Shown here piece after piece: positions 37,491 through 61,283 of a DNA stretch of 64,000 nucleotides; within the stretch, counting starts at the first letter, position 1, and the number at the start of each line of letters is the position of its first letter. A program made the translations under genes and the position numbers. The stretch comes from Syncephalis fuscata S228 (taxonomy: Eukaryota; Fungi; Zoopagomycota), in assembly GCA_025786725.1 (NCBI GenBank), contig JAHLTZ010000004.1, positions 434,001-498,000 of the forward strand, read 5' to 3'. Below the pieces are notes generated by a model that saw only the letters and a list, made by a program, of their open reading frames with translations, was not told the origin of the DNA and ran no database searches.

Positions 37491-39191
37491 TAAATAGTAG
37501 TAAGTAGTAGTGGCAATAGTTTAGGTGGAGAAAGAAAAAGGTAAGATAATAAAACGAAATAGGACAGACAGACAACAGACACACAAACATACGCACACAC
37601 ACGCACAGCAGTTATGTAAGGACGTGCACACGCAAACCAAAGAAAAGAAAGAGCAAAAGGCGGCAATAGTTGAGAATGTGTGCGGATGTAAATGGGCGTG
37701 TATGGCTAAATCAATCGTATAAGAGAGAGAAAGAGAGAGAGAGAAAGGCAGTAAATCAAAATACGAATGAAAGAGCGATAACAAGATTTAAGTGGGGATA
37801 CAGAGGCCGACAACGGGCATAGAGAGTGTGAGTGAGAACGAATGAAGAAAAGGTAGGCTGTAGTTAAAGGGGGGAATTCAAAAGGGTTGCCGAAAAAAGA
37901 AGGGCATTCATCTTTGACGCTTTCTATTTCTTCACTCAGCTCATGTGTGTGTGTACTGCATGCGGGGAAGTAAAAAGGGTCGGAAAGGGATATTATTATA
38001 GTATAGTCATAAGTTAATTAAGTTTTGTATTATATTTTATTATATTGATAATACGATGATCGGTAAACAGTAGGTAGAATAGTATATAGTATACTGCAAA
38101 GTTTAAATCCTGGGCAAAGTATGTTTCATAATGTTTTCATGTGTATAATAAGCCTAGTCGATAAATTAAACATGGGTCTATTAATGGGAATTGAGGCCAT
38201 TTGCGGAGTCGTCACTCCGAAGTACGTGTGTTCAACATTATCCATCTTTATCTCTATCTACTTCTCTTTTTCTCTTTCTGTGTGTATGTAGGTGTATGTA
38301 TATGCATGTGGATGTCTATGTGTGTGTAGGTGTATGTGGATATAATAATAACTAAAAGGCTATCCAATTTGGCAATCCATGCCACATGTAATGGATATTG
38401 GGTGTATGTCTACAATCATGGAAAGTAGAAATAGAAGCGACATGGATCGACGTGTAACACACTATAGGATAGTCAGACGAGTAGAAATAAACAGAATGAT
38501 GGCTGGTTGTTTAGTCACTTGCATTCAGGGTCGGCCTTAGCTTTTTCTACTGCTTTTCTTTTCTTGCTTTAATGAATAATAGGCGAACCAAAGTAATACA
38601 CAACATATAAGCGTACATGTGCAAGTACTGGAGCAAGATAAAAGGGCAATATGTATCAGTAATTTAAAAAAGGATAATTGAGGTGTGTTTACGAGGCAAA
38701 GTACAAGAATTAATATGTTATACTAATAGATTCAGTAATGATAAATCAGCGTACACATTTTAATATCTATTAACTAAGATTTATAATAATAATAATAAAA
38801 TACGATAATACGATTAATATAATGCACGATTAACCTTCTTAAAAAATGAAAAGTATTTAATAAATTCTAATTATATTTTATATCGTAATTTTGATTTGAT
38901 CGATTACAGACTGGACTTTGTTTTTATATTTTTATACTCTATTTTTTTGCGATTCTTAATTGATTGTTCTCGTTTTCACCATCATCTTTGGTTTGTTTAA
39001 GGTTTATACGTGGTTTATTGTTGTTGCGTATCTATCTAGTAAGATATTGGTTTGAATGAGCTATTCTACAACGGTATAGCATTGGTAAGCTTGTCATTAC
39101 AAGTAGATTGTACCAACGCGCATTTATTATTGCCTTAACTCAGTAGCGACTATTCAATGTTGAAAAGGACGCTTCAAAACCACTAGACAAT

Positions 39192-41643
39192 ATGCTATTG
39201 GGCACCTCACCTATTCTAGTAGTTTTCGCCTCTATTCTACTATCATGGCTACTATTTGTGGTATATAGCCGAGTAAAGAGCGGAGCATATACGCGTGGCA
39301 AAGTTGTTCGATGCTTTTACTGCCATCAAAAGACACGGCTACCACTTGCCCAGACAGCATCAATTGGCGCAGATTTAAGTTTGAGAAAGAATACAAAACA
39401 TAAAATGGAAACGCCATATGATTGGCATTGTCAATATTGTCAAAATAGAAATTTACGTGATTCTGTAAGTAGGATGTGGTTTATGATGGTACAATAATGT
39501 TTATAATATGAACTTTGATAGCAAGGAGAACTTGTCGATCAAGTGCCAGCAATGTTTAGCGAATTATCAAATCCAATTTCTCAATGGAAAAGTAATATCT
39601 AGATGCAAATCATTATGAAAACTAATGGCTATTTATCGTTTATTTTTAGATAATACGCAATTTGTGGAGACTCGACGACGACGTAGATGTCAAGGACTAA
39701 GCGATACAGAACTTTTAAGTGATGATGAGGAACTTAATATACCATTTTGCAATGGCTGCCTATCAAATCATAATATGGTATTACAGCTATTGGCTACATA
39801 TAAACCGGATGAATCGGTAAATAGACACGGTATTTGTTATAAATGTATAACTAATGAATATTGTAAACTAATAATAGAATCCGAATTTTAAAGACTACGA
39901 TACAGCTATAGAAATGTATCGAATTAAGGTGGAAGAGCGGTATCCATCTTTATGTAAGGAATGTGCACCTAGAGTTGAAAACAGAATTGCTCAAACAAAT
40001 GCTCGAGTAAGAGCACGCTACTTTGGCGAATCACTTTTACGTTCGAAAAAAACGCCTTTCGTTAATAATCTGCCACTTTTTCGATGGTGGAAAGTGCTAA
40101 TTTGGCTATCAATATTTGTTGTTGAGTGGATTTCTCGAGGTCTAATGTTTTATATGTGTTGGTCGGGACACGTCAGTTTATTGCGTAAGTTTTGTTTTTT
40201 ACTTGCACAATAAGACTTACGTATAACGAATATTTAGTTTTACCACCTATAACTATAATAGGCATTACCGATAATATAGCAAAATTGCCGCTTATTAAAT
40301 ACACAACTATAGAAGAGAATGGTATTTATTTGATTTTAAGTATGGCTTGTTGCACTGTGCTATGGGATCCAACATGGCTTCGTCGAGTATATAAGCGACA
40401 GCGAAAATATCCACGTAGACTAGCCTATTATCGAGTAGGTAGCATATCTCTTTCCAATATTATTACTAATGTTAATATTTAGCTATGTCAAGCATTTCTA
40501 TGTGCTATGAGGCTAACATTGATTAAACTGTCTGATGAATTTTTAATATCCAATCAAGGATATTTATTACGATATAGTTTTATTTTATTATCTACTATGG
40601 TAAATATATAAAAATACACTTGTTGCAGCATTGTACTTAATACAAATATTTAGTTTATTGCACTATCTTGGATCTATACGCCAGTAGCACCAAGATTAAT
40701 TAGTTTGTGCAAAAATCCCACAACAAAAGTTCGTCGCATTCAATTACGGCCATTGCCGGTAAGTAATTGTAGTGTAAATCTGTATATATCTAACCAATAT
40801 ATACATATTCTCAGAAGCGAACTGGAAACAAATCTATGCGTACAGAACAGCCCATGAGTGGAGAGAGTGACAATGCGATATCGCCTTTTTCGACACCACC
40901 TAGCTCGTCTAAGCGAACTATTAGAGAGCGACGAAGAGATACAAATGCACTTGTATTTAGCGATGATGATGAGGATACATTATGTGCAGATACCCAGTAT
41001 ACAACATCGCTGGGCACGATGCTTCAGAATCTAACACTAGGCACGCCTCGAATAGGTCGTTCGCGCCAATCTACAGTTGCTGTTGATAATAAAAAGAAAG
41101 GGAAAAAATCCCGTGCAGTTAAACGCAATAGAGCAGCTATCTCCCTGCCTCCTGCCGCTTTGACGCCACGAGATAGTGATGCTGAGGCTGATAGTATGGA
41201 TTGGATGCCAAGTACACCGCACGGTCAACGAAAACAGCCGTATCGAGATACACGTAACATTATATCACGCCCGCCACCAACATCAGCCGATATACCAATG
41301 AGTGGCTCTATAGGAGCAACAGGATTGTTTCGTGTACCGCCTTCATTCCATAACCAAAATCCTTTTGGCCAGACTTATTTGACAGATGTTATGGCACAAC
41401 AACAAGAGCATAGAAAACGACACGGTACGCAAGAAGATGGTAATAGCTATAACACTGTTGGTAATTCGCTTATTACAAACAATGATAAGGTAGGTGGCAG
41501 TAGAATGTGGACTTGTAAACTTCAAATGCTAATAATGCATATAATTATAGGAAACGGGACTGGAAAAGTTATTTCAGCAATCGTTTCAAATTCGCGACAG
41601 TACAAGCATTACTGCCCGTGTAAAACAATGGTTTTCTAGCTAA
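39192..41643 (+). CDS. IMA1: Inner nuclear membrane protein Ima1 / TMEM201 family (multi-exon)
   Basis: Four CxxC motifs (CFYC, CQYC, CNGC, CKEC), EERYPSLC, TM helices, last exon ETGLEKLFQQSFQI. The start codon is uncertain. Confidence 0.88.
40495..41269. repeat. Right arm of the ~0.77-kb inverted repeat (inside Ima1)
   Basis: Reverse complement of 7304-8077 with only a few substitutions. Confidence 0.95.
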
Positions 41644-41951
41644 TATCAGAATTGAATGCATTATTTATCCAAGTTTATTATTAATGTACAAAATAAATAC
41701 TTATACAGCAAATTGATCTCCACCACTTGCTACTTTGTCGCATGCTATACCCCCTGTTTCTATTTGTATCACAATTACTAGTTATGTGCATTATATAGGG
41801 ACATCAAAACAAGTTCAATAGCTATGGAAAAAAGCCATGCTTTTATCGAGCCCACCATGCAACTGACAAAAGCATTATATATATTAAATGGTCTTGTTCA
41901 GTTATGCTGTATTTTCCATCTAATTCATTTTATACTGCATAATTATATACA

Positions 41952-43808
41952 ATGTTTAATAGCATGGTAACGCTTTTAATACTGCTATCCTTTGCCGTGT
42001 CCGTCTTTGGAACAGCTACATTTCATGTAGGCAATCGAACATTCCAATATCATACACAAGATTTGCTTGAAGTTGAAGTTACACCGTATACAACTCATGG
42101 TGTTTTAGTGAATGCCGTGTTTAGCAAGAATGCATCATGTGAGATATTGCCATCTGTTCTTGATACAGCTCGATCTGCATTGAGTAGCGTAAAATCCGAC
42201 AACATCACAAGTGTGATTATTGCTATTGATGAAAAGAAGGCAAAGTACCATGACTGTAAAACAGCTACTCATGTAAATAGTCATCATTAGTATTGCGATA
42301 GTATATTCTAACTATTATTATGAATAGGCAGGATTCGCAGTTTCTGCACTTAATCAGTATTTAAATGCTACAAGCGGATTCTCGATCGACACGATACTAT
42401 ACATGCCACATATAAAACCAGGTATTGGCTTTGGTTCGTATCAAAGCTTAAATTATAAAAAAAAGAAGTTTAGTTTTTACGAAGGTGCTTCGCCAGTTAA
42501 TATCGCATTGCTGCCGTATGATAAATATACGATTATTGTGGATGCAAGCAGTAAACTGAAAGTAACGACCATTGTAACAGTTGAAGAAGGTAATTGGTTT
42601 AGTTTGATATTGGCAATTATATTTCACGCATTAGCTAATGTATAGACTATATATTTATAGAGCCAGGACCCTGGAATGATGTTTTTTTATCAGCTGGCTA
42701 TCAAGCGTTTATAAATTGTACACTGATTGTAGTTATGAGCATCATACTATACAGCTTTGTAATTCTGTACAGCTTGATCAAAGCAAAAATAACTATTACT
42801 AAGCAACACATTTTTATCTATGTTTCTGCACTGTGTGCTGCAGTATGTAAGGCAAACTCGTTACTATTAATATGAATAGCATGCTAAACAGTTTTTCTGT
42901 GCGTTTAGTATTTGTATCTGGACTAACACTTAGACAAAGCAGTGTAGCTTATAAATGGATACTATTTTTTCAAGGAGTTTTTTTATACATTGGGTTTTAT
43001 ATATTAATATTGCTATGGTATGTTATTTAATGAAGCAAAGTTTACTATTGTTATATCTAAAAACTTGCTAATAATAATGAATAGGCACTCAATTGCAATT
43101 GGCGTGCAAAAAAGTCGATATTTACAACTGCTTCGATATGCTATTATTATTTCCCTTATAAATACGATTATAAATCGAATATTGTATATTATTTGTGAAT
43201 TTATTCCATTATCTACAGCGCAGGGTATAATGCAAATAATTAGTGGTCGTTTTGTATTGTTTTCTCAATCTATCATTATCATTGCATTCGTTTATTACGG
43301 TAATACTATAATACGATTTCTAAATAATATAATTCTAAACTTTGGTGCTTAGGTATAATGTTCTGGTTAAAACAAGGCGATTTACTAGCAAATAGTGCTG
43401 CAAAGCATGTACTGTTATTAGTAAGTATAGTAATTATACTAGTATGAAAGTATAAAGTCGCAATACTTACCAATAGCATATTAGGTAACAAGGTTATGTG
43501 CAATATTTTCATTGGGATATTTGATGATATTTATTGCAAATATGATGAAAAATGCAAAAGTTTGGAACTACAGTGTTGAGGCTGAATTTGCTCGTGTGAT
43601 TCTTCTCGAAATCTCGTATGCTGTGCGTATCAGTGTGCTTCTTTTTGTTATTGGTCTACGTTCAAAGTCTGATGGCCAGTGTAAAGATCTAGCGACAATT
43701 AATGTAGACAACAGAGATAATACTACAACATTGGTACAAAGTACGTATAATAATTACGACTTTCATGCTTGCGCGATCATGTCATCAAACATCCAACCAG
43801 ATGGATGA
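41952..43808 (+). CDS. Orphan PA-like-ectodomain 7TM receptor, copy R2 (7 exons)
   Basis: Signal peptide MFNSMVTLLILLSFAVSVFG, ~170-aa ectodomain with 2 Cys, EPGPWNDVFLS, and seven hydrophobic segments after splicing at GT-AG introns. Confidence 0.85.
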
Positions 43809-44666
43809 CTGGTATTCAAAGATAGTACATGCTATAACACGACTACCATATCTAATTAAATTAGTACATGGTTTGTCAGTAATGGAAAATCACTTGATGC
43901 TGTTTATTACGTTGACAATAGCCATTATCTTTAATTATAAAACACAAATGTAATATACTATCAACAAACTATTTCTAAACACATAGATTTTTTCTGCATA
44001 AATAGAATAAAATATATAAAAACAAGTAATTCAGTAACTGAAAAATGCAGGAATATGACATGTTTATACAAAGTATACAACAGACGTGGACAGATGTGCG
44101 ATAGGCAGCTCAATGATTGATCTAAACTGTAGAAACCATGCTATAAACACTAATTACTATACTGAAATAAATGTACAATAACCGATCGGCATTATACTTA
44201 TTTATTCATTGCGCATGTTGCAAATGGTAAATATCAAAGGTTTACGAATAAAGTAGTACTACCAGTAAATAGCTTTTATACATTAATGTCATGCGCGACA
44301 TGTCCATATATTATTGCCTAAGCCGTTGTTGATTACAAAATGCATGTTTATTATCAGCGATTTAAAGTAACAAATATGAATTTAATAGTTTGCTGAGCTG
44401 GACGATGCTAATCAGCATGTTTGAAGTGTCTTTATGATATAAACTGATATAAACATACCAAATACATATATTACTATTTGTACTACTAATGGATTTGTAT
44501 AAACAGCATAGTACACACACACATCGACACGCCATACATGAATACTGCACAGGCTGTTTGTCCAACTAATATTATCAATATGAATGGTTATTGCTAACAA
44601 TATTGCACAACATTAAATAGTACGTTAATAATTACACAGCACATGTCAATTATTATTTGTTTAATT
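43574..44666. repeat. Left arm of a ~1.09-kb near-perfect inverted repeat (partner 46650-47748)
   Basis: Identical translations on opposite strands (43765-43953 + and 47369-47557 -). Arms differ by a (GT)n length and a few SNPs. Confidence 0.97.
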
Positions 44667-44701
44667 GTTAAATACTAATTGTTGCCATACAATATAGTTA
44701 A

Positions 44702-45546
44702 TTAAATCTTGCCTAAACGTTTACGAAGAGCACGTGTTCGCTTTCTCAGCTTTCTTCGCTTATGCTTGTTCATTTTCAATTTACGTTTACGTTTAATACT
44801 TGTAGCATAAAGTGGAGCAGGTTTTTGGTTTTGTGTTGGTAGTGGTTGTTGCTGTTGTTGAGTAATCTTGCTACCTTCTTTTAAAAATCCATTGGCAAGC
44901 AACTGACTGTTGACGATACCACTACCTTCAGCATCTCCCTCTAAGCCGTGCTGTGCCCAATAATGCGGATCGGCTGCTGGTGAAAGCACACGTGCTACAG
45001 CTGGTGCGGTCGATGGACGTACCAATTTTGGCGGATGAAAGGGTAGAAAATAGTGAAATTTTTCTGCTAACGCTTCCATTGCTAATTGAGCATTAATATA
45101 TTAATATTAGCAATAAGTTTCCTGTGTTTAACAAATATTTAACGTGTTAACTCACCATTATCCTCGGCTTTGCTTTGTTTGCGTCCTGTGGTCGTCCACT
45201 CTATCGTGATTGCCTCGTCATCTTCAGTCATAAAAATAGAGCGGGGTCTTGATGATGGCTGGTACGAAAGTAGTGGTCGGTGTAGCGCGTAGAAACGATC
45301 TTGCGCCACCGTCTTCGACTCAGCTGCCGATGCCTGTAAGGAATCACCCAAGTGTGAGGGTGCAGGGGGCGGATAGGCTGCTTGCAATGAATTACTCACA
45401 TAGTAGGTTCGTTGCTGCTGGTGAGATCGAGCTGGCTGCATCGCCACGCTGGACAAGGACGACAATGGCTGAAAGCAGCGAGTACAGCCACTGCTCACCC
45501 AACGACGGGTCTGCCCGTTTAGTGAGTGCGCAAGTGACATGGTCAT
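44702..45546 (-). CDS. COX24: Mitochondrial small-subunit protein mS38 / Cox24 family (DUF1713), 2 exons
   Basis: C-terminal TSIKRKRKLKMNKHKRRKLRKRTR, FYALHRPL, presequence-like N-terminus. Confidence 0.85.
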
Positions 45547-45749
45547 CGAAGAAGAACTTGCAGCACTCACGCTTTCGTGCACGCGCACTCAAATACAAGA
45601 ATCGATGTGGAGGAGAAATAAGCGTTCAGTAATCAACAGACCGGTAAGAGCCGGTAATAAGGAAGGAAAATGTATTATTATAAAACTTTTTTGTTATAAT
45701 TTTCATTATTATATTTTTGGTTAAAGTTTACTTTGAGTCTCCCCAGGCA

Positions 45750-46378
45750 GTAAAACTTTTTACGCAATTGATTGTAATGATTTAAATAACTGATTTGTGT
45801 TTAAATCATCGTTTATAATAAATATTAAAGCAATATTATTGTTTATTATCATTTCCATAAAATATAATTGATTAAATGTAACAAAACATCGTATCAGTAA
45901 TAATATTAAACATTTAAATAAACAATGTAACATACTATTTGATTTCATTGAAACATTTAAGGTTGATCATTATTATTGCTGGCTATGTGTAGAAAGATTG
46001 ATCGAATATGAATAGAAGCCATATAATTGCAACTCCGTGTTATTCCGCATTTGCTGTTATTGCATTATAATAATGATCTTTTCTATTTTCTAATATTCCA
46101 CTATTGCATTTTGGGCATATTGTGCTGTAAGATCAATATTAATATAATTATTATAAGTGTTGTTTATTAAACAGCCACTTTCTCTATAGCCAATCCGACT
46201 AAATAAATGACATTTTGAACAATTAATATCATAATGACAATATATATGTATATTAAAACAATAATAAAGATAACTAATTAATTACATTATTATACTAATA
46301 ATTACACATGAATTAATTAATGTTGGATGCAATGTTATACATGTTATAGTAATGGATAGGTGTTTAATTGTGTCTAAG
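45750..46378. repeat. Non-coding segment also present at 8170-8800
   Basis: Colinear shared strings (see 8170-8800). Confidence 0.85.
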
Positions 46379-46649
46379 TATTAAAAAAATGTAAATGTTA
46401 AAATGCAATAGCTCCATGTTTTTAATCCTTTTTTATGTTATCATACATTTTTGCTGTTGTATCTTTTGTTATTACATTCTATATTAATACTAGTGATTTT
46501 ATTGTTAGTATTAGCTGGATTGCATTGTATTATGTATAAAATTGTTTAGTGTCAAATTATGTATTTACGCCATTATATAATAAAAAGTAAAAAAATACTA
46601 TAAACCATTATAAATTGACAGTGCTTAAGCAATGCCTACTAAAATAATT

Positions 46650-47748
46650 AATTAAACAAATAATAATTGACATGTGCTGTGTAATTATTAACGTACTATT
46701 TAATGTTGTGCAATATTGTTAGCAATAACCATTCATATTGTTAATATTAGTTGGACAAACAGCCTGTGCAGTATTCATGTATGGCGTGTCGATGTGTGTG
46801 TGTGTGTGTGCTATGCTGTTTATACAAATCCATTAGTAGTACAAATAGTAATATATGTATTTGGTATGTTTATATCAGTTTATATCATAAAGACACTTCA
46901 AACATGCTGATTAGCATCGTCCAGCTCAGCAAACTATTAAATTCATATTTGTTACTTTAAATCGCTGATAATAAACATGCATTTTGTAATCAACAACGGC
47001 TTAGGCAATAATATATGGACGTGTCGCGCATGACATTAATGTATAAAAGCTATTTACTGGTAGTACTACTTTATTCGTAAACCTTTGATATTTACCATTT
47101 GCAACATGCGCAATGAATAAATAAGTATAATGCCGATCGGTTATTGTACATTTATTTCAGTATAGTAATTAGTGTTTATAGCATGGTTTCTACAGTTTAG
47201 ATCAATCATTGAGCTGCCTATCGCACATCTGTCCACGTCTGTTGTATACTTTGTATAAACATGTCATATTCCTGCATTTTTCAGTTACTGAATTACTTGT
47301 TTTTATATATTTTATTCTATTTATGCAGAAAAAATCTATGTGTTTAGAAATAGTTTGTTGATAGTATATTACATTTGTGTTTTATAATTAAAGATAATGG
47401 CTATTGTCAACGTAATAAATAGCATCAAGTGATTTTCCATTACTGACAAACCATGTACTAATTTAATTAGATATGGTAGTCGTGTTATAGCATGTACTAT
47501 CTTTGAATACCAGTCATCCATCTGGTTGGATGTTTGATGACATGATCGCGCAAGCATGAAAGTCGTAATTATTATACGTACTTTGTACCAATGTTGTAGT
47601 ATTATCTCTGTTGTCTACATTAATTGTCGCTAGATCTTTACACTGGCCATCAGACTTTGAACGTAGACCAATAACAAAAAGAAGCACACTGATACGCACA
47701 GCATACGAGATTTCGAGAAGAATCACACGAGCAAATTCAGCCTCAACA
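46650..47748. repeat. Right arm of the ~1.09-kb inverted repeat
   Basis: Reverse complement of 43574-44666. Confidence 0.97.
47514..47748 (-). pseudogene. Truncated 3' fragment (TM7 and tail) of receptor R2
   Basis: VEAEFARVILLEISYAVRISVLLF...QPDG is identical to R2. There are no upstream exons, and the thiolase stop is 60 bp away. Confidence 0.9.
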
Positions 47749-47808
47749 TCATATTGCAAATATCAATAGTATAAATGAATTTATTTGCAATTGGCTGCTA
47801 TTGATTCA

Positions 47809-49549
47809 TTAAAGGTGGGCAGTCAAATAGTTGCTATGACCTGAGACAATCACTTGATCAAAGTCATCCTTAGTAATAGAATGACACTCAATTGCTGGAT
47901 TGTAACCAAAACGTTTACGAGGATCAACGGCTGCCGTCTTGCCCTTTTCCGTCTTTAGTCCACAGTGATGGTAAAGACCGATGACTACAGCACCGCCTAA
48001 TCCGATGTTATGCTGCAAAGCTACTTGTAGATTTGGTACTTGGCGATCGCCGCACCATCCACGTAATTGCCACACTAGTTCAGCACACTGTGCCAGTCCA
48101 GTGGCTCCTAGTGGGTGGCCTAGTATTTACAGATGTATTAGCTATTGCACACGACTAGTGATCCAATTCATGACGCAACATACCCTTTGAAATAAGACCA
48201 CCCGACGGATTTACTACGCATTTGCCACCAAATGTATTATTATTTTGATCGACCATCAAATGTGCTTGTCCTGGCGCGCATAATCCTAAAGCATCATAGG
48301 TAATTAACTAAACAGAGTGCAAGATAAACAAGGTTATAAAAATAAAAAACAAATATATTTATTTCAAGTCTTACCTCGTTGGCCGAGAAACAATCGTGTA
48401 GTTCTACCACGCCCACTTGCGATGGCGATATGCCTGTTTGCTTATAAACTTGTTCAGCAGCACATCGTGTCATATCGGCACCGGCCAATTCAATAGCACT
48501 TCCTTTAAGTGCCTTTGGAGAATCGGTTGCCATCGTCTGGCCGGCCAACTCAACAGCTTGTGCTTCAAGGCGATGCTCGCGTACAAATGCTTCCGATACA
48601 AGGATAGCCGCGGCACTGCCATCAGACGTAGGGCAGCATTGCAGCATGGTAAGTGGTCCGTGTACAGTACGTGATTTTTTCACCTGATCAAGTGTGTAAA
48701 TGTCGCGGAATTGAGAATAAGGATTGTTGGCACTGAATGTTATTATTAATAAACTATTCTATATCTGTTGCTGCAGAACACTCACCTATGTCGATGGTTC
48801 TTCTCGCCAATCTTCGCCATATGTTCTGGTGTTGCGCCGTATTTCTCGCAGTACTCTATACCGGCGTTACCGAATATCTGGGCTGGTGGCGGGCCTTTGC
48901 TAAATCCACGCGTTTCAGCCATAATCCCAAAGTTCCAATCTATCGACAAAAAATTAAATTATTGTAAGCGCACAGCTTACAATCAATGGTACATCTTTTT
49001 TTGTTACCTAAAGGTGCAGTACGGTCGTTAAACTTTGACGATAAAGATCCTAAACAGCATATCCAACATATTTAATTTATTTTACGTTAATTATAAAACA
49101 TTTTTGTTTACCTGGATCCATCTTCTCAAATCCTAGTGCCAAAACACAATCAGCAGCACCTAGCTCTATTTGCTGACGAGCCATATAGAGGGCGGTACTG
49201 CCCGTACTGCAGTTATTATTTACATTAACAATAGGAATTTGTGTTTGGCCAAACTGATAAAGTGCACGCTGGCCACAAGTACTATCGCCGTAACAGTAAC
49301 CTACGTAGGCCGACTCTACTGCATTGTATTTGATATTAGCATCAATCAATGCCTTGGTAACTGCTTCGCGTGCCATATCTACAGAAACACACGGAAAAGC
49401 GGTATTAGTGTGTTAATAGTTGGTCAAGTGTTCGTGAACAGCCATATAGATACCTGGGTAGTCAAAATTGTCTCGACGTCCCGGCTTTCAAACTTGGTCA
49501 TGCCCACACCAACCACGTACACTTTGTTATGAAGGCGTTGTTTAGTCAT
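47809..49549 (-). CDS. SCPx-type peroxisomal thiolase (non-specific lipid-transfer protein thiolase), multi-exon
   Basis: [68 protein letters not shown]1-like C-terminal AHL. Confidence 0.93.
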
Positions 49550-50570
49550 AGTAAACTAAAGCTTTGAATTATATAGCTTAAAGGAAATAGAGAATAGAAT
49601 TGACAGTAATGGAGTTAAGAATGTTGGTGGTAATAAAGCAGCTGTAGAAAGGCGGGGTAGTTTAATACAAGTGACCGGCAACTCAAATTGCCGATGCGCG
49701 AGCATGTATTGCCTAGTACAAATACAACGTATTTACTATTATTGTCACGATTAGCTGACATATCTATCGGAGTAGCGGGTTTTCCGCGATCTTTTGTGGC
49801 AATTGTTGTTATTATTCGTCTACCTTAAATAAAAACTATAGACAAGTAAATTAAGTCAAAAAAGCAGCTAATAAATATAAATGTAGTAGACATATTTCGA
49901 GTGCATATTACAAAAGTAATTATTGTAAATACTCAATTTAAACACTCAATAATGGCATATTAGTTATAATTCGAATGATTCTACAAGTTACACTGATACA
50001 ATACACTATATTTAATTACTGGTTTATTACAATTTACTTATGATTGTATCAAAAGACTATGTTGATTCAAGAAGAAAATAAAACGTTGAATTAGTCCATA
50101 GTTTTGCAAGTTGTTAACAGCAAACGATGTTGCCGAGTATTGAGGAATATATATATAATGTAATGATAATTCGCTACTATTAACACTTCTATTAATTGAC
50201 TTTCTCTTTCATTAGTCTCGTGCGATGTTGTCTGTAATCCGTAAGTAATAGCGTACATTTGTAACAAACAGTAGAGAGGGGAGGATAGAAAGAAGATTGG
50301 TGGTTAGTAACCATCTCTATTGTGTTATTATCTTTTAATCATTACAACACCACATACACAATTGCAAGCACTACAGAATTATTTTCCATAAACACCTTGT
50401 GTGTACATATAGGAAATGCTTACTTCCAGAAAAGACATGCATACTATATAGTTCTATGAAAAGACGGACTACGTACATATAATAATAATCACGACAGTTG
50501 CTACTACTCTTCTTCTACTATTACTACGACACTACTATTGCTAATATTACTCCTATTACTACTACAAAGA

Positions 50571-52132
50571 CTAAAAGTTGAGTTCTCGAAGATTATCCGT
50601 AAGAATAATATCCTTGACACTATTCATGATGTTGCTAATATGTTTGGTATCGGTGGCGTGTGTGAAATGCGAATACACTGTCTTGTCGGGACTACGGTTA
50701 AGTGCTTCAAAACGTCGCTTAAAGAACACACTAGTTTGTGAAGGATCGTGGTCGTTGCCTATAGTATTAAAATGTTGCAATAACAAAAATACACATGATG
50801 ATTAGTAAGACTGTTAAAATGCCCTTTTATCTATTAGTATTATGTACAATACACACCTTTAAAGTCAGGGAAGTATTGACTAACCGGGCTGTAATGAATT
50901 TTCTTTTTAAACAAATCGACCTTATTCAAGAAAAGAATCACCGAGGTGTGTACAAACCATTGCGAATTACAAATCGAGTCAAATAACATGAGAGCTTCAT
51001 GCATTTGGTTCTATAGTATTATTGATCATTAGTATCAAATTAAAAATAAGATGGCTCATGATGGTCACTTACCGTGTCACGATCTTCAACCAGTACTTGG
51101 TCATATCCACTAATGGCTGCCAAAAACAAAAGAGCTGTCACATCCTCAAAGCAATGAATCCACTTTTTACGTTCAGATCGTTGACCACCCACGTCAAACA
51201 TACTATAATTGCATGTTTAGTAGGGAATGTTGGTTAATTGTTCATTATTTTACTTACCGGTATGTAAGCGCTCCCACATTAAACAGTGTTTCTGTAATAC
51301 CGGTTGTTTTGACACGACAACGTAAAATATCTTGATCGGTTGGAATGTATCCAGGTGCAAATAATCGATCGAGATCATTAAAAAAACTGTTGTAATAAAA
51401 TAATCAAGTATTATTATTATTATTACAATTATTATTAATCTATGTTAAAAACTTACTATTCTGCTGAATCGTTGATAGCACATTCATTAGCTTGAATGAG
51501 ACAGGCTCGTACATTGGCATCGGACCACAAAGAACGTAATGCTACTTGATAATCATGCGGATATGGTTCATTGCGTCTAATGACAGGCACTTGCGAAAAT
51601 AATGACAAATAGCTCTGTCCCTCCATGACAAATACATCGATCAGCTTTCATAATAACTATTATCCCATTATAACTGCTTTTAAACTAATATTAAGCCAGT
51701 TTATCACCACCACCACCACCACATCATCATCATCATCAAGTTTGCTTAAATACACACCATGTTACTAGAATCAGAAAACTGTATTTTCCCTTGCTCCATG
51801 GCTTCCAATAGCAATCGCATACTGTGTAAAAGATTGGTAAAAATGACAATTCGATGTGATTCCCGTTCTAAATCCGTAAATCCTTTGGCATGAATCAAGC
51901 GCATCTGTTTCAAAATGGTTGATTTACCCGATTCACCCGCACCTAAATAAATAAATAAATATTGGTTTATTGGTTTATTGATTAAATGAATATTAATAAA
52001 CAATCATTCACTATATCACTCACCGAGTAATAAAAGTTTCACTTGTGTTTTACTTTTCTTGGCATCCTCACGAATTTGTCGATCAATTTGACGAGAGTGT
52101 CGCTCCTCCGGCGATGCCAGACAGTTCCCCAT
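50571..52132 (-). CDS. Heterotrimeric G-protein alpha subunit, probably fungal group II
   Basis: [56 protein letters not shown]-terminus NLRELNF (no CGL). Confidence 0.95.
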
Positions 52133-54504
52133 ATCGATGATCTCAACAACAGTGCGTTAGCTGTTCGCTAATAACACCGGCAATAGTGATGATAAGAGTG
52201 ATAGGCGTACGTTCGACGTAAACAGAACGAACTAGTCGAAATGCTATGCTGGTTGCCTATGCCAAGAGGGCCTTTACTAACTAGAATCGAGTATAAACAA
52301 AGATGGCAATAGATTAGGAAAGGACTGTATATATTAATACTAGATGACCATTACACAGGGCAATGGAGGCTAGTAAGACGTGGTTTGCTGATTACAAATA
52401 GCTATACAAATAAAGCCAATAGGAACAAAGAGGAATGACAGACAGTGGTGTAAAGGAAAGTAAAGTGGCGAAGAAAGAGAGAGAGAGAGTAGTGGAGAGG
52501 GATAAACAAGTAGAGTAGTGAAGAGTGTGAGTGAAGAGTGAAGAGAGGCAGAAAAGGGTGAAATAAGGTCTGTAGAGTGGTCTATACTGGTCAGAGCAGC
52601 GATTAGAGACACATGTGCCAATCAAACAATTAGAGTAGATTAATACAATAAAGAGAAATTAATATAAAATGTGTACCTAAGAGCCAACTTATGAATAGTA
52701 AAAGCTATGGACAACAGATACGCTCATCCATCCCTACACCTTTGTACATAGGCACATCTAACACATACAGCAGATACAGCCTACAATACAGTAATATCTG
52801 TTTGTTCGCTGCTGTCTACTGATCGATGTTCTGGCCAGAGGCGACCATCTGATTGGTTACGCGTGTATTTCATCAACCACGCGCTACGCCTTTAATGTAT
52901 TTCGGTGCCAACATGTGTATTGTTGTCATTGTGATTATCGGGTGTACACGTATAAATGATGTGTTACCATTGCTATGAGTGCTGTATACCAAATTATAAA
53001 CGATAGCAATCATAGTTATAATAGCTATGGTGGCAATAATAATATGTATAACATGAAACGATATACCTGGTACCATTAAACAACGGATTGGCACGTGCAT
53101 ACTAGCCACTCGAAGTCATTCTATAGGCCACATCTTACAAATGCAATGCATTACTCACACTTACCTATTTGTTTGTTAATAACCGTTAAGCAACTGTGAC
53201 TATTTTTATAGCGAATCTCGACGATAAAAGAATAGCGGATTGTGGTTCAAAAAGTACAACGTTGAAAGGAGTGCCGCTATTATACTACAGCTACTACAAC
53301 TACTACAATGATTAAAAGATTCAACGCAAAACTGAAGGCGTTAGCGGTAGTATCGTCGCAAGTAGTCAATAATAAAAGTGACAAGGAATCACAGTAATAG
53401 CAAGATACGAATAAGAATAGAGGAGAGAGAGGAGAGAAGCGTGCGTGGCTGTAGAAGCAACGACAAATAAAACGTTTGCAATTGCAGTAGCCACCACTCT
53501 GTCCAGAAAAGAATAGGACTCTGCTAGACGATGAAGGCAATGACCAACTGGACTATAGTGTCGCAAATAGCTATAGGTGTCGTCGTAACAGAGTTGGCAA
53601 CAATAGAATAGTAGTAATAATAGTGTAATAATAGTAGTAAATAGCAGCAGCGATGGCAACAGAGGACAAGAGGCGACAGCTGACACAGAAAAAACCGTAG
53701 AAAGAAAGGCGAGACAAACGAGTAAACGAGTGGCCGGCTGTAAGACTTTGACCAAACTCCGTTCTCTAAAGCGTTTATGGCTACACAAACTAATCCAGAT
53801 ATGCAGAGTGCCGTGTTTCACTCTCGATACGGCATCGATTCATACATTAACAATAGTTTCCCAAGTTGTAATCAGTATTTTCTTCTTTAAATGACTTTTA
53901 TTCCTCCACACGTTCTTCTTCCGACCACGTGGCTACCGTTAAACGGTAAAAGGTTGAAACTAAGTTTATAATGGTTGGCTGAATAACGTAGCTCTCACCT
54001 AAGCGCGGTCACAGCGAGTGCCGAGTGGATGCAGCATGACCTCAAGGCGATGCATTGTAGTCACGGCCATCGCGGTGATGGCATCCAGAAGAAATTAATG
54101 GCGTACAAGTACAACTTGTGACCGTCTAGTAATTAATGAAAATTCAATTACGGCGAAAAAGGAAAACAGCATTTGGCATTGGCAAAAATAGTATTTGTCG
54201 GACATGTAAACAATAAAAACAAGCCAAAAAGGCAATACTTTATTTAGATGGCATCGCGCAGTGCCTCGGACAATTAATGCCGTTTTTCCAATAATATGTG
54301 TTAATGAAAATGATCTGTTCTTATAGGCTTTTTAATTGCATCATCGGCATTAATAAATAGTCTTTTACGTATTTGTTATCACACTCTTTTCGATCGTTTA
54401 TTAATAGTAGGCACTGGACGATACTACACGTGCGAATAGATGTAATAGGAAGAGAAGGGAGGGAGGAAGACGAAGAACATGGGATGACCTATCCTAGTAA
54501 ACAA

Positions 54505-56428
54505 TTATGGATGACCACTGGCGTGGCTAGTGTTGTTGTAGTTATAGAATCTTCCACCATCGGCTCTGGTTGGTGAGGCAGTGGCTGGTGTTGGCATATG
54601 TCCCGACATCACGGCACTGTCGCCCGAGAAGCAAGAATGAGAGCTTTTTGGTGATAGTGCCGTGTGTTTCCTATTAGCACCTGTGCCCGTTTTATTGCTG
54701 CTATCTTTAGGAGTGCCAGAACTTGGACCAAGATCGAGGATAAAGAGAAGAACAATAATGCGTATGGTGTAGCTTAGACGATTGAGAACAATACGAAATA
54801 CTTCGCCACCAACGCTATAGTAACATATGTTTACCACTTCGAGCATGGTCGCGTAAATACAAGTAAATAGCCAAAGAAGCATATTATACAAATATTTGTT
54901 ACCTAAGGTAAGTTATTACACATTAGTATTAATAATGGAATGGAGAGGTAGCAGATGTCTTACTTTAGCCAATGCATCCTGCGTTGATCGGCTAACAATT
55001 GATTTTCGCTGACGGAACCAGAAAATAATGCCTATTAATTGTGATTAAATCACCAATGTTTAAAGTAATTCATTGTTTTAACTTACCATAGTAGGTGAAT
55101 AGGGCCAATACAACATTTGGATGGTAACTACCATAATGGTAATAATTATATAGACATTGGTTCCTGATATAAAGTTGGAGACAAATCCAAAGAGAATAAA
55201 CAAAAAGAATTTGACCATGGCCATAGTGAATGAGCCAATAATGATGTATTTAACAACCTTGAGATAATGGACATTTTGCACACCTTTTACAATAGAGTGC
55301 CTATATAATTGCACAATTTTGGCATAATGTTAGTGCGGTATTGGTTGGTAAAAGAATAGCATACCACAATAAAAGTAACAGATGAAATGCAATATTTGTA
55401 AAAAACTCTAGTACATTGTCTATCCAAATATATGATGGCGTGGCTATTGGTAGTAGTATCTCGCTCATAAAACTAGTAAATAGCATTAGATACAAGCTTG
55501 TTCTACAACTTTTGTTAGACTTACGTATAGAGGAAAGGAACGCAAATGCAAATATCAATGTTCGATACTTTGACATATATCTGCCTGCTCTTATCATCTT
55601 CGTCAGTACGAATATACTACGTAGTAAGAAAAACAGGTTAAGTGCAAATAAAATGTAGATTTGGGCCTTGTAGGTCGGGGATAACATGGAGTCATTCCAT
55701 ATGCCTTGTTCTGCAAAGGTAGTTGGTCAGCGCTTACGTGATCTCAAAGCAATATACTCATAATGATAGCCTACCTTCTCTTATACTAATGGTCATTGCC
55801 GCGTTGTTTGTGTTTTTCTTACGAACGTCAGCATAATCTATTGCGCGCATAAGAGCCATAGGGATGGGCGATTGGCCGCTCGGAAACCAAAATCCGAATG
55901 TAACATAATCGGCACCATAAACACTGCCATCAACGGGCCCTCCCATATTTGCAAGGAGATAGAGCACATTTTCTATCGATACGCCTTTAATAGTTCCCGT
56001 TGATTTTTTGAATTTATAAACCGAGATACCCGGCTAAAACAGTTACATAGTATGTTATCATTTAGAAACAGTTAAACAGTAAGGCTTACATGTACAACGG
56101 TGTGGCATCCGAAAATGGATGCTTGGACAGCATCAACTACAATGGTTAGATTGACCACACCATTTGGATTTGCCGATTGATCAATGATGCTTTTAGCAGT
56201 GTCTATCATTTGTGTTGTAAGTTCGCAGTCGCCATCTTTTTTAAAGGTGGCGTTCACGGCAAGTCCAGTGATAGAGTAAAAGTCGCTGCGGAATTCAAAT
56301 AAATCCTGTGTCGGATAAGTATAGTTTTTACCGCTCACTTGGAAAGTGGCTTCTGATGCTACCAGTTGCGTGTAACAAAGCAAAAGTGTGAGCAGTCCCG
56401 CCGTAAATAAAGTGATCCAGGCTGCCAT
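54505..56428 (-). CDS. Orphan PA-like-ectodomain 7TM receptor, copy R3 (most divergent)
   Basis: Signal peptide, ATFQVSGKNYTYPTQDLFE, SPIPMALM, EQGIWND, FHLLLLLW|HSI. Same exon layout as R2. Confidence 0.82.
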
Positions 56429-56963
56429 GGTGCTTGTTAATATGCAAATAGGTGTGTTTGTTTATTGTTTGTTTGTTTGTTTGTGTATATATATATTAAC
56501 AAATATAAGCAAGTATTATTAACGATATTATAGATGAATAATAGAAGGAACTGTAAAGAGAACGAAGAATGCAACCGCCCATGTCGCAATGGTTCGTTAT
56601 CGTTGGAGCTATCATGTGGTTGGTCCATTAAGTGCACAATGGTCCAGAAACTTGTTTTAAATCGGTGCACTGCGTGTGCCTGAAATCATTGCACACCCAC
56701 CGTATACGACACCATTTATGTCAAGGAGAGGTGGGTGAGCACTGCAGTGCGCATGCTATGCACTATGCAGCCGTAGAATAATGATATAGCCTGAGTTTCA
56801 TGCGTCACAAGCTCTACCATTAATCAAGACAAGTGGGAAAATAGCTATGGTTATTCAAAAAAACAGGCTAATTCAAATAGAGCCGTCGCGCCCACATGTA
56901 AACACTTTCTGGCATAAATTACTGCTTTATTATTTATTTGACTTGTGATTGGTTATTACGATA

Positions 56964-58730
56964 TTAATCCTTGCTTTCTATCATGGTTTGTGAACTTATG
57001 GATTGCTTTGCTATTGTAGAAGATCGACAGATAAAGCCAAATACAAAAAGGAGGGCCACGCTGCGTATTACAGTTCCGAGATTATTTAATATAAGCATTA
57101 TAAGTTGAAGAGTTGGATTATTTGTTTTCATGTTGGCAAGAGCCAGTACAACTGCAATGAAAACAAGAGTAACTCCAACTGCGCATAAAATACAGATTCT
57201 TATCACCTATTCGGATTCACACGAGGTAGTCAGCGGATGAGAAGCGTATGGCGCTTTGTTATTTTCAACCTACCAAGTCTAAGGCATTTTTTGCAGTTTT
57301 GTTTGTAGTAAAATTTGATTTTTTAAACCAGAAAAAAATGTCTAGATGCGTAATAAATCAGCTTTAATGCCACTATATTGAATGTTTACGACTTACTATA
57401 TCCAGCAAATGTTAGAACTGCAATAGCCTGACATACTATTATGCTGATGACGTTTATATTGTACGTCAAAAGTCTCCAATCACTAGGCACAATATCGCTA
57501 ACCAAGCTTCCAAAAGCAATAATAGTGTTAAATAAAAGTGAGATCCATAAAAAATATTTAAATATTACAAGAATTAAGGTTTTTTTTAACTTTATCATAA
57601 GGGAGTGCCTGTTAATAGACAATTAAAGCTTAGCTTTAAGTGTGTGTTTTGGATAATTAATATATATTATATGGCTTACCATAAAAAGAAAAGAAGATGA
57701 AATGAAATGACACCGAAAAAGTTTCGAGTAATAGTCAACCAGATAAACGTTACAGATGTTTGCTTCATTGGAAGACTTATAACAGTGACTTTTATATGTT
57801 TTTTTGTTAGTTTCATCATATAATTAGCATTAGATATTCTTACTTATAGTGCTAGCAAGTCCAAACAAATATATAATCATGTGTTGGTTTAAATCAAATT
57901 GTCGTCTTTTGATAAGCCCGTATACAATTACATAGGTATACAATACAGAGACTATAGTCGCGGCCATTAAACAATATATAAACGCTTCATAGGCTTTTGA
58001 TAAAAAAATGTCATTCCAAGGTCCAAATTCTATAGAAAACATAATAATGCACCTGATTAATAAATGGACACATCTATTTAATTTTGTTGCTTTATTACCT
58101 TCATTAACCGTTGCAATAATTGCTGTGTTTAATTTTTTGCTGATACCAACAGCTTTTTGATAGTCGCTTCTTGATAATAGTGCAATATTAATTGATGAAT
58201 CACTTTGAGCGAATTCTAGATAAAATGTATAATATGGTAGAGACGTGTAGGCACCGAAATTAGGGCCGGGTTCTTGGTAGATCACATATAACATAGTGTC
58301 GATTGAAAAGCTATTTTTAGCGTTCATGTGCCGTCTAAGCTTCCCAATTGCAGTTGACGTCTAATTAGAATGTTAATAAAAATACCGCTATAATACGATA
58401 ATCGTCACCTACATAACCAATTGTTTCGCATCCACATTTGGTTGCTTCATCTTCGTCAACAACAATAATTACACTTGTGATGTTGTCCAATTTTACACTA
58501 TCCAATGCAGAACGAGCTGTATCAAGAACAGATGGCAATATTTCACATGATGCATTCATATTAAACACAGCATCTACTAAAACACCATGAGTTGTATACG
58601 GTGTAACCTCAACTTCGAACAAATCTTGTGTGTGATATTGAAATGTTTGATTGCCCACACGAACCACCGCAGCGCTAAAAACCAATGGGATGCAACATAA
58701 CAATAAAACGAACACTTTTACAACCAGCAT
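56964..58730 (-). CDS. Orphan PA-like-ectodomain 7TM receptor, copy R4
   Basis: MLVVKVFVLLLCCIPLVFS, VGNQTFQYHTQDLFEVEV, EFGPWNDIFLS, FHLLFFLW|HSL. Short C-terminal tail. Confidence 0.82.
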
Positions 58731-59357
58731 GTTTGCACAGGTCAATGTATTCGTTATATATAGTAGTGATAGTGTTAAGAAAACGTTTGTATATTTGAGA
58801 AGACAACAATGAAGATCGGCGGAGTTAATGTCAGTTCTAAACATTAAATCGACGCCCAACGTTTTATAAAGCATAGGATTAGTCCTTGTTGGCTATTCTA
58901 GTTGGTTTCAGGTTGCATAAAAGTCGCCTATACTCGAACTTCAATTGTATTCTTGGCATTCGGTATTTTTAGCTCATGTGATTGGTTTGATTATTTAATT
59001 CCATTGTCACCTATTAGAAGAATCATAAATTAGAACAATTCAATTAATTCAGACTTTACCATCTTAATACATTTTTTGTTGCTTTTACGGTCCAAATATC
59101 CATTTGGATTAATTATCACACATCTGTCTATATATACTTTATGTCTTGTGTAAACTCATGTTATATTTGTACATTTTTCAGTTACTGAATACTTGTTTTT
59201 ATATATTTTATTCTATTTATGCAGAAAAATCTACGTGTTTGGAAATAGTTTGTTGATAGTATATTACATTTGTGTTTTATAATTAAATATAATTGCTATT
59301 GTCGACATAATAAACAGCATCAAGTGATTTTTCATTACTGACAAACCATGTACTAAT

Positions 59358-61283
59358 TTAATTAGATATGGTAGTCGTGTTATAGCATATACTATCTTCG
59401 AGTACCGGTTGTACATCTGGTTGGATGTTTGACGACATGATCGCGCAAGCATGAAAAGCGCGATTATTACATATACTTTGTACTAATGTTGCAGTATTTT
59501 TTTTGTTGTTCGCTTCAATTGCCACTTTATCTTTACAGTAACCATCAGATTTTGGACGTAAATCGATAACAAAAAGAAGCACACTAATACGCACAACATA
59601 CGAGATTTTGAGAAGAACCACGCGAAAAACTTCGGCCTCAACACTATAGTTCCAGACTTTTAGATGATACAGCATATTTGCGGTAAATGCCATCAAATAT
59701 CCCAATGAAAATATTGCACATAACCTTGTTACCTAATATGCTATTGGTAAGTATTGCAACTTTATACTTTGATACTAGTATAATTACTTATACTTACTAA
59801 TAACAGTGCATGCTTTGCAGTACTATTTGCTAGTAAATCGCCTTGTTTTAACCAGAACATTATACCTAAGCACAAAGTTTAGAATTATATTATTTAGAAA
59901 TCGTATTATAGTATTACCGTAATAAACGAATGCAATGATAATATAAATTGAGATGGTGCCAAAAGAAGAGTAATGACCATATGTACTGTATCGTATACCA
60001 CAGATGCTGGAATAAATCCATAAATAGCAGATAGCACTTGATCGATAATCATAATCACAAACGAGATAATAATGCCGTAATGAAGGAAAAGTAAGTATTG
60101 GCCGTTTTTCACATTGATTGCAATTGAGTGCCTATTCATTATTATTAGTAGTAGTATTAGTATTAGTAAATTTTAATAGAGTTAGTACTATTTTTTTGTT
60201 AAAATGCACAACATACCATAGCAAAAGTAGCAAGTAGAATCCGACGGACATGAAAAATCCTTGAATAGCACTTATGCATTGGTATTTCAAACTATTTATT
60301 TTGAACGGGAATCCAATGACACACGCTAACATAGAACCAATTGATTAGTATTTTGTTAATATTAAATTGGAAAACTGTCTTACATATTGCAGCACATAGC
60401 GCAGAAATATACATCACAATATGTTGCTTAGAAATAACTCTTTTTGTTTTGATCAAGCGGTATAATACTGCAAAGTTGCATAATATAACAACTATAAGTG
60501 CAGTCAGCGTGCAATATATAAATGCTCGATAGTCAGCCGATAAAAAAACATCATTCCAAGGTCCAGGCTCTATGGATACACAGTTTATACATTAGCTAGT
60601 CTGCAGAATATGATAGCAATATCAAAGTAAAGCAATCACCTTCTTCGACAGTTACAATGACTGTTGTGCTTAAGTCATTGCTTGCATCTACGACAGTTTT
60701 ATAATCATCACATAGTAGTAGTGCAACGTTGACTGGCAGAGTGCCTTCGTAAAAGTAAGATCCCGTTCTTTTATACTTTAAGCTGTGATATGCGCCAAAA
60801 CCAGGTCCTGGTTTTGTATGAGGTATGTAAAGTGCCGTGTCAATCGAGAAGTCACTTGTATCATTTAAATGTTGCTTAAGATTAGAGATTGCAACACCCA
60901 CCTAATAATAATAATAACGATTAAAACATGCTGTTGCAATCACTACACTGATGGCTTACGTGAATAATTGTTGCACATCCGCATTCTTTTGCTTTCATCA
61001 GATCAATAACAATAGTGACGCTTGTAATGTTGTCGGATTCTACGCTATTTAATACAGATCGAGCTTTATCAAGAACAGATGTTGATATTTCGCATAATGC
61101 ATTTTCATTAAATACGGTATTAATTAGAACGCCACGAGTTGTATACGGTGCAGCTTCAACTTCAAACAAATCTTGTGTGTGATATTGAAATGTTTGATTA
61201 CCCACGCGAAACATGGCCATACCAGAGACGGACACAACAAAAAACAGCAGCGTTAAAAGTGTTATTATGCTATTCATCATCAT
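59358..61283 (-). CDS. Orphan PA-like-ectodomain 7TM receptor, copy R5 (1-bp frameshift ~59940, probably an error)
   Basis: MMMNSIITLLTLLFFVVSVSG, EPGPWNDVFLS, GFYLLLLLW|HSIA, FVYYG, VTRLCAIFSLGY. Confidence 0.82.

Follow-up and report, generated by a model that had tools for sequence, protein, structure and literature searches.

A candidate receptor family with a protease-associated-like ectodomain and a seven-helix bundle beside the G-alpha genes of the mycoparasite Syncephalis fuscata

Introduction

The plant proteins VSR1 and RMR and the animal proteins GRAIL/RNF128 and RNF43/ZNRF3 start with a signal peptide and continue with an alpha/beta module of the protease-associated (PA) type, N-terminal and lumenal or extracellular, that binds peptide or protein ligands. 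G-protein-coupled receptors (GPCRs) with large ectodomains, such as the class C receptors with their Venus-flytrap domain, LGR4-6 and Frizzled/Smoothened, are built in the order ectodomain, hinge and seven-transmembrane (7TM) bundle, with the N-terminus outside and the C-terminus inside. Here we describe a family of genes from the genome of Syncephalis fuscata S228, a zoopagalean parasite of other fungi, whose products appear to combine a PA-like ectodomain with a GPCR-type 7TM bundle (PA-7TM family). Five paralogues, R1 to R5, are found together with two G-alpha genes on a stretch of 64,000 nucleotides, which is called the window throughout (positions 434001-498000 of contig C306, JAHLTZ010000004.1). 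Unless a contig is named, all positions are those of the window.

Several other seven-helix proteins have to be considered as relatives. The THH1/TOM1/TOM3 and GPR137 proteins (PF06454, PF27607) have a 7TM bundle, reside in endomembranes and are not known to carry a PA ectodomain. PalH/Rim21 (PF08733) is a fungal 7TM sensor for which no ectodomain is known and which signals through an arrestin-like partner. In the GOST proteins (GPR107/108, TMEM87 and yeast Ptm1; PF06814), an ectodomain is also joined to a 7TM body. As to the biological setting, the mechanism by which obligate mycoparasites that live on early-diverging fungi locate and recognise a host is, to our knowledge, not known, and we know of no receptor that has been named for the Zoopagales.

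Results

Gene models and domain architecture

The analysis was based on the S. fuscata assembly (29.4 Mb, 371 contigs). The window is AT-rich and its spliceosomal introns are short, and a naive open reading frame (ORF) search that minimised the number of introns led to ambiguous gene models. It was replaced by a protein-guided spliced aligner written for this work, with annotated paralogues as guides. With this procedure, all five paralogues were found to consist of 7 exons and 6 introns of 48-100 nt (Table 1). Exon 1 codes for the signal peptide and the N-terminal half of the ectodomain, exon 2 for its C-terminal half, exon 3 for a linker and TM1-2, exon 4 for TM3, exon 5 for TM4-5, exon 6 for intracellular loop 3, and exon 7 for TM6-7 and the tail.

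Each paralogue thus encodes a signal peptide, an ectodomain of about 175 aa with two cysteines, a linker with the motif E-x-G-[PI]-W-N-D, and seven TM helices. The two cysteines and the linker motif are common to the whole family, as are the motifs LLLLW, which closes TM3 on its cytoplasmic side, and YYG, which closes TM5. Hydropathy analysis shows the signal peptide and seven further segments, and the ectodomain contains 3-4 N-glycosylation sequons in addition to the conserved cysteines. A topology with the N-terminus outside and the C-terminus inside would fit the hydropathy, the sequons, the ectodomain cysteines and the basic cytosolic loops (positive-inside rule).

A preliminary description of the window had proposed five paralogues with a common exon structure, signal peptide, ectodomain and linker, three of which (R5, R4 and R3) would form a minus-strand tandem array upstream of the G-alpha gene at 50571-52132 and in the same orientation. 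ORF lists, three-frame translations and spliced alignments bear out the gene positions, the shared features and the tandem arrangement.

Table 1. Positions of the PA-7TM paralogues and of associated features in the window.
Feature	Position	Strand	Description
R1	4685-6616	-	paralogue with the same exon structure (ORFs, spliced alignment)
G-alpha1 (P0069)	35446-36748	-	353 aa; canonical fungal group I (GpaA/FadA, Gi-like); C-terminus CGLL
Ima1	39192-41639	+	between G-alpha1 and R2; belongs to the conserved backbone eIF2alpha-Galpha1-Ima1-(R3)-Galpha2
R2	41952-43808	+	clean 7-exon ORF, 494 aa, open as assembled; adjoins Ima1 and G-alpha1
R2 exons	41952-42272, 42328-42589, 42661-42846, 42909-43017, 43085-43299, 43353-43420, 43485-43808	+	exons 1 to 7
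Inverted duplicate of the 3' part of R2 exon 7	47463-47753	-	within the right arm of the 1.09-kb inverted repeat
G-alpha2	50571-52132	-	intact, 7 exons, 350 aa; MGxC N-terminus; all G-box motifs
R3	54505-56428	-	7 exons; 515 aa after addition of RNA-supported bases; 2.4 kb upstream of and co-oriented with G-alpha2
1-nt assembly deletions in R3	behind 54852, behind 55114		extra G in RNA contigs
R4	56964-58730	-	clean 7-exon ORF, 465 aa, open as assembled
R5	59358-61283	-	7-exon ORF, 511 aa with the additional base at 59942 supplied by the RNA
1-nt assembly deletion in R5	behind 59942		extra G in RNA contigs

Predicted structure of ectodomain and membrane part

An annotated S. fuscata paralogue encoded on another contig, P0013, was folded with AlphaFold2 on the basis of an alignment of 36 sequences. 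The model (predicted local distance difference test, pLDDT, 85.9; predicted TM-score, pTM, 0.81) shows a signal helix, an alpha/beta ectodomain at residues 25-195 and seven long helices at residues 207-440. A short hinge helix is located at the GPWN motif, between the ectodomain and the TM helices.

When the ectodomain was compared to known structures with Foldseek, the top matches were PA domains: those of GRAIL (3icu), VSR1 (4tjv, 7f2i), RNF43/ZNRF3 (4c9v among the matches listed), the transferrin receptor and the aminopeptidase PaAP. They belong to at least five unrelated protein families and were found with TM-scores by target of 0.5-0.63, a probability of 1.0 and E-values from 1.6e-3 to 4e-2. 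All neighbours of the ectodomain by ESM features are PF02225 (PA) clusters, with scores of 0.82-0.83 that count as a lead only (below 0.9). At the gathering score, PF02225 had no match in the 36 homologues or in the exons of the window. The structural matches support a PA fold of the modelled ectodomain, which agrees with the PA-like ectodomain that had been proposed from the sequence of the window. An intramembrane protease of the SPPL2 type, which combines a PA domain with nine TM helices and carries the motifs YD and GxGD (Peptidase_A22B), was also considered; the family has seven helices, and none of the 36 homologues matches Peptidase_A22B.

Folded alone, the TM part of P0013 again yields seven helices, at a pLDDT of 93.4. 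In an exhaustive structural alignment the TM bundle matched many class A GPCRs with Z-scores of 15-17.3 and a root-mean-square deviation (rmsd) of 3.5-4.5 Å over 223-251 residues, followed by class C receptors and microbial rhodopsins with Z around 15. Foldseek matches of the TM-only model are almost exclusively GPCRs of classes A, C and F, and a structural search of the Atlas returned DUF6534, LGR4, PRRT3/4, Frizzled and PalH at TM-scores of 0.63-0.75. The models and alignments uphold the proposal of seven TM helices in a GPCR-type bundle. At the sequence level, the GPCR families of Pfam (7tm_1/2/3, Frizzled, Dicty_CAR, STE2/3, Git3 and others) gave no match to the 36 homologues at E-values up to 1.

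A likeness of the TM region to TOM1/GPR137 proteins had also been proposed from shared sequence motifs, and for this only a faint trace was found. A single homologue from Thamnocephalis, P0041, matches PF06454 (THH1/TOM1) from TM1 to TM6 with 18.1 bits (cut-off 25; E 0.0019; profile positions 6-228 of 273), and the other 35 of the 36 homologues have no match. Similarly, P0043 is the only homologue that matches PalH (PF08733), with 22.1 bits and thus below the cut-off of 34.1. The nearest neighbours of the TM part by ESM features are PRRT3, THH1/TOM1, GPR137_N and an Endomyxa cluster that partly carries a PA domain, at scores of 0.81-0.83, which again are leads only. The proposed likeness is weakly supported, by one homologue below the cut-off and by the ESM leads. 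Some homologues carry the UniRef label 'Lung seven transmembrane receptor-domain-containing', which would imply membership in the GOST family. This assignment was rejected, as PF06814 matches none of the 36 homologues, while the same profile finds the one canonical GOST gene of the genome elsewhere.

Transcripts and assembly errors

As assembled, R3 has two apparent frameshifts (near 55121 and 54850), and R5 and R1 have one each (near 59943 and 6169, respectively). RNA evidence was available as spliced contigs of this locus from one public run. A contig of 1841 nt covers R3, with all six predicted introns removed. Three introns of R5 are confirmed by RNA contigs, and the sole contig on R4 is unspliced (56989-57373). 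At each of three sites in R3 and R5 the RNA contigs have one extra base (Table 1), and these sites are within 1-7 nt of the predicted frameshifts. Adding the three bases restores the family reading frame in both genes. Because the RNA contigs carry the missing base and the frame then reads through, the frameshifts of R3 and R5 are assembly errors. Both genes are transcribed and intact, and their reading as pseudogenes was rejected. The apparent frameshift in R1 is of a similar kind, a 1-nt gap (C, where R2 has CC) that may be a further assembly deletion, and an ATG is missing at the expected start of this gene.

The 1-nt deletions are also the reason why the public models are wrong or truncated. 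The database protein KAI9598390.1 (P0001) is identical to the exons of R3, and this model skips TM6 and retains an in-frame intron of 51 nt, one of the six that are spliced out in the RNA contig. For R1, the public model (P0014) spans the TM part only, and that for R2 (P0006) is truncated to the ectodomain. The deletions are situated within coding exons, where gene predictors skirted them at the expense of a wrong protein, as in KAI9598390.1 without TM6. Other genes in the S. fuscata assembly may be affected likewise.

Family size and distribution

With exon 1 of R2 as query, 39 matches corresponding to about 35 loci were found in the S. fuscata genome, while the exon coding for TM4-5 gave 26 matches. 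The contig of the window carries 11 family loci, 7 of them between 440 and 560 kb. With about 35 loci and no Pfam match at threshold in the 36 homologues, the earlier notion of an expanded orphan family is supported. For a wider search, a profile built from exon pieces (profile A2) was run against 1.84 billion cluster representatives, and 65 of these were found to belong to the family (E up to 1e-3). Among the 29 representatives that were traced, 24 belong to S. fuscata, S. plumigaleata, S. pseudoplumigaleata, Thamnocephalis sphaerospora or Piptocephalis; the remaining five are contigs from metagenomes or read assemblies, and one of these five falls into a cluster with a protein from P. tieghemiana. 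A word-indexed search with the family alignment, in which only the top 8000 candidates were scored, returned S. fuscata paralogues and one metagenome protein. Judging from these searches, the family is rare and, among the matches traced to a named organism, restricted to the mycoparasitic Zoopagales.

The family member of P. tieghemiana (locus L007, 12283-13989) is a single uninterrupted ORF, while the genes of Syncephalis and Thamnocephalis have 6-7 exons. The annotated 979-aa product at this locus may be a fusion to an upstream gene.

In a quick tree, R2, R4 and R5 form a clade that consists of S. fuscata sequences only (100% support), and its sister group (92% support) comprises R3 and P0194, a protein from S. 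plumigaleata. P0194 is the orthologue of R3 (100% support in the Shimodaira-Hasegawa-like approximate likelihood ratio test, SH-aLRT) even though the two are only 38% identical overall. R1 and further nearby copies probably also belong to the S. fuscata-specific clade. The growth of the family to about 35 loci is a case of rapid birth-and-death tandem duplication.

The G-alpha genes and their neighbourhood

G-alpha1 is 85-90% identical across fungi. G-alpha2 ends in ...RELNF and has no cysteine at position -4. With PF00503 and the exon of G-alpha1 as queries, the assembly yielded two G-alpha loci and no others, each of them located in the window. A weak candidate for a third one, at 298.9 kb of contig C212, turned out to be an Arf GTPase. 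Both G-alpha genes are found within 2.4-5.2 kb of family members, with Ima1 as the only gene between G-alpha1 and R2. Stretches no more than 3 kb away from a family locus make up about 0.9% of the genome, and those up to 6 kb away about 1.5%. Adjacency by chance is unlikely, roughly at the 1-2% level, and this level was judged after the fact. The physical linkage to both G-alpha genes, which had been noted from the window, thus extends to the complete G-alpha set of the genome.

The genes of this region in S. plumigaleata follow one another as eIF2alpha, G-alpha1, Ima1, P0194, G-alpha2, thiolase and Cox24. Here, too, the R3 orthologue is directly upstream of G-alpha2 and co-oriented with it, so that the pair is kept within the genus Syncephalis. 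Compared to this order, the block R3/G-alpha2/thiolase is inverted in S. fuscata, with R2 on the side of Ima1 and with R4 and R5 next after R3. In Thamnocephalis, the backbone consists of G-alpha1, Ima1, a gene for a 205-aa protein and G-alpha2, and the G-alpha2 orthologue occupies the same position.

We conclude that the two G-alpha genes have been neighbours for a long time and that a single lineage of the family, R3, came between them in the Syncephalis ancestor. R3 is the founder and the oldest local copy, located between the G-alpha genes since before the split of S. fuscata and S. plumigaleata. The cluster around the G-alpha genes in S. fuscata then resulted from local duplication, with the spreading of the clade that contains R2, R4 and R5. 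Since R3 is old and orthologous to P0194 while R2, R4 and R5 belong to a species-specific sister clade, we count the five adjacencies as one event. The adjacency as described from the window is real, but its apparent repetition reduces to the founder R3 and its local duplication.

The close neighbourhood of the two G-alpha genes with Ima1 between them is an observation in its own right. It occurs in three zoopagalean genomes (Thamnocephalis, locus L002, 1-11281; S. plumigaleata, locus L005, 2851-16469; S. fuscata, 35446-52132 of the window), and we know of no description of this conserved pair.

Duplications and rearrangement in the window

An inverted repeat of 1.09 kb (arms 43574-44666 and 46650-47748, 99-100% identical) brackets the gene for Cox24/mS38. 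Its left arm begins within the last exon of R2, and the repeat sits at the breakpoint of the R3/G-alpha2/thiolase inversion relative to S. plumigaleata. The 3' part of Ima1 (40836-41400) is present a second time, in nearly identical form, at 7174-7737, where it flanks R1. It therefore appears that R1 and its flank arose when the Ima1-R2 junction was duplicated as a segment, in inverted orientation.

The paralogues also differ in how their two parts have diverged. Between R2 and R5, identity is about 61-64% in either part, while R4 and R2 are 57% identical in the ectodomain and just 32% in the TM body. With an R2-like ectodomain on a diverged TM body, this pattern suggests a mosaic origin of, or gene conversion in, the ectodomain exons of R4.

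Discussion

We consider R1 to R5 to be members of a Zoopagales-restricted, receptor-like family characterised by a signal peptide, a PA ectodomain, a hinge and a GPCR-type 7TM bundle, and assign a probability of about 0.65 to this reading. For a receptor-like PA-7TM family as such the figure varies between about 0.65 and 0.85 with the extent of the functional claim. In such a receptor, the signal peptide would be cleaved, and the N-glycosylated PA ectodomain with its two cysteines would be exposed at the outside of the cell, with the tail in the cytosol. The PA domain, a peptide- or protein-binding module in VSR, RMR and RNF43/ZNRF3, would then capture an external ligand, and the 7TM bundle would relay the signal to a cytosolic partner through the TM3 end (LLLLW), the TM5 end (YYG) and loop 3. 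While the architecture, the transcription, the expansion and, at the genus level, the linkage to the G-alpha genes are shown by the data, ligand binding and the location at the cell surface are features that we infer, as is the identity of the transducer, and coupling of the family to G proteins is at best doubtful.

Several results weigh against the reading as a receptor family. No Pfam family was found at the gathering score with single exons or with the 36 full-length homologues, and a profile search of all PDB sequences gave nothing significant. The predicted structure is that of a paralogue from another contig and not of a gene from the window. The structural matches show little drop in score from one to the next, and microbial rhodopsins come nearly level with the GPCRs (Z 14.8-15.4). 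For this reason the predicted fold is to be taken as that of a generic 7TM bundle, which speaks neither for a function nor for a specific GPCR class. With respect to the G-alpha genes, no family member is detectable in the G-alpha backbone of Thamnocephalis, where four tandem family genes are found on another contig, beside ATR and ANTH genes. In P. tieghemiana, the family gene that was found, whose neighbours carry no gene names, and the G-alpha1 locus are not near each other. The proposed conservation of the linkage therefore holds for R3 and G-alpha2 in S. plumigaleata but not for Thamnocephalis and Piptocephalis. In addition, the two Syncephalis species share synteny across the entire 7-gene block, and thus selection need not be the cause of the conserved position of R3. 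Finally, the genome contains other candidate GPCRs, about 10 loci of the 7tm_3 type (class C) and 3-4 loci of the Dicty_CAR type (cAMP-receptor-like), so that the PA-7TM family is not needed to account for the G-alpha genes. The Dicty_CAR loci are found at 164-180 kb of contig C212 (three within 16 kb) and at 0.5-1.2 kb of contig C104, while the 7tm_3 loci are scattered over the genome. A complex prediction for the TM domain of P0013 with G-alpha1 had a score of 0.01 and was not used as evidence either way.

The functional readings differ in what they make of the bundle and of its neighbours. The family may consist of true GPCRs that use the neighbouring G-alpha2, G-alpha1 or both as transducers, with R3 and G-alpha2 as a conserved cassette for the sensing of the host (Mucorales). 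A receptor family linked to its transducers was also the suggestion of the preliminary description. The GPCR-like fold, the presence of the only G-alpha genes of the genome 2.4-5.2 kb from family members where just 0.9-1.5% of the genome is that close, the retention of the co-oriented pair in S. plumigaleata despite the low identity of the orthologues, and the transcription of R3 argue in this direction. However, the linkage is one founder event that was judged post hoc, the synteny extends beyond the pair over the whole block, and the linkage is absent from the loci compared in Thamnocephalis and Piptocephalis. Moreover, none of the 36 homologues has a GPCR match in Pfam, other GPCR candidates exist in the genome, and the faint sequence leads go to TOM1/GPR137 and PalH, for which we know of no use of G proteins. 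We consider true GPCRs with such a cassette unlikely. The most far-reaching version, a new fungal GPCR class for host recognition in which the PA domain reads host peptides or surface proteins, R3 and G-alpha2 act as a cassette and the expansion diversified specificity, is more improbable still. The leads just mentioned would suggest a 7TM protein from the neighbourhood of TOM1/THH1/GPR137, PRRT3 or PalH to which a PA domain was added. It may be a sensor of the endomembranes or the plasma membrane that works through arrestin-like or Rag/TOR-type partners, or a scaffold, and would not depend on G proteins. This possibility, which we regard as open to considerable doubt, draws on the long in-register alignments of P0041 to PF06454 and of P0043 to PalH, on the ESM neighbours (PRRT3, THH1/TOM1, GPR137_N and the partly PA-carrying cluster) and on the Atlas matches to PRRT3/4 (TM-score 0.73) and PalH (0.63). 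Against it, the Pfam signals are below the curated cut-offs and come from one of 36 members each, ESM scores below 0.9 are leads only, and solved GPCRs score equally well or better in structural comparisons.

A receptor for cargo sorting or trafficking is very improbable. With its PA domain it would bind sorting peptides of the C-terminal kind, in the manner of the plant proteins VSR and RMR, and its 7TM part would anchor and route the protein like the GOST proteins GPR107 and TMEM87. The PA domain of VSR1 is indeed among the best ectodomain matches (4tjv and 7f2i, TM-score by target 0.60-0.63), and the UniRef label of some homologues points to the same group, but PF06814 (GOST_TM) has no match among the homologues, the canonical GOST gene is elsewhere in the genome, and the ectodomain is predicted as an alpha/beta PA fold and not as a GOLD beta-sandwich. 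A housekeeping sorter would also not be expected to reach about 35 fast-diverging copies. That a dispersed repeat family left these copies in the window as decaying pseudogenes, with a pattern of no functional interest, might have been concluded from the apparent frameshifts in R1, R3 and R5 and from the truncated or odd public gene models. This is largely refuted by the spliced RNA contigs, which supply the missing base at all three sites in R3 and R5; the corrected ORFs align from end to end with the family consensus, and R2 and R4 are open as assembled. We attach hardly any credence to it.

Literature searches returned nothing relevant on GPCRs in Syncephalis or on a PA domain with seven transmembrane helices, and the combination of a PA fold with a GPCR-type 7TM bundle was not found in Pfam, the PDB or the searched literature. 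The family provides a concrete and testable set of candidate host-sensing receptors for the mycoparasitic Zoopagales. With only two G-alpha genes in the genome, coupling tests are unusually tractable. Care has to be taken with the public assembly, where 1-nt deletions corrupt gene models of the PA-7TM family.

Comparison with known systems

With VSR1/RMR, GRAIL and RNF43/ZNRF3, which provide the best structural matches of the ectodomain, the family shares the signal peptide and the N-terminal PA module. These proteins are single-pass and carry EGF repeats or a RING finger, whereas here the predicted PA fold is fused to a seven-helix bundle. The THH1/TOM1/TOM3 and GPR137 proteins resemble the family in the bundle, to which one homologue aligns from TM1 to TM6, and are among its ESM-feature neighbours; for the fungal sensor PalH/Rim21, the likeness consists of the weak match of one homologue and the Atlas match. 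In the GOST proteins the general plan of ectodomain and 7TM body recurs, but their ectodomain is a GOLD beta-sandwich and that of the family is predicted to be of the PA alpha/beta type. The closest parallel in overall order is to GPCRs with large ectodomains. The TM bundle superposes on those of class C receptors, LGR4-6 and Frizzled/Smoothened with Z around 15-17 and TM-scores of 0.5-0.7, while the fold of the ectodomain is different, sequence similarity is absent and the class motifs are not found in the family. The PA-7TM family is thus a variant on the theme of a 7TM receptor with a ligand-binding ectodomain.

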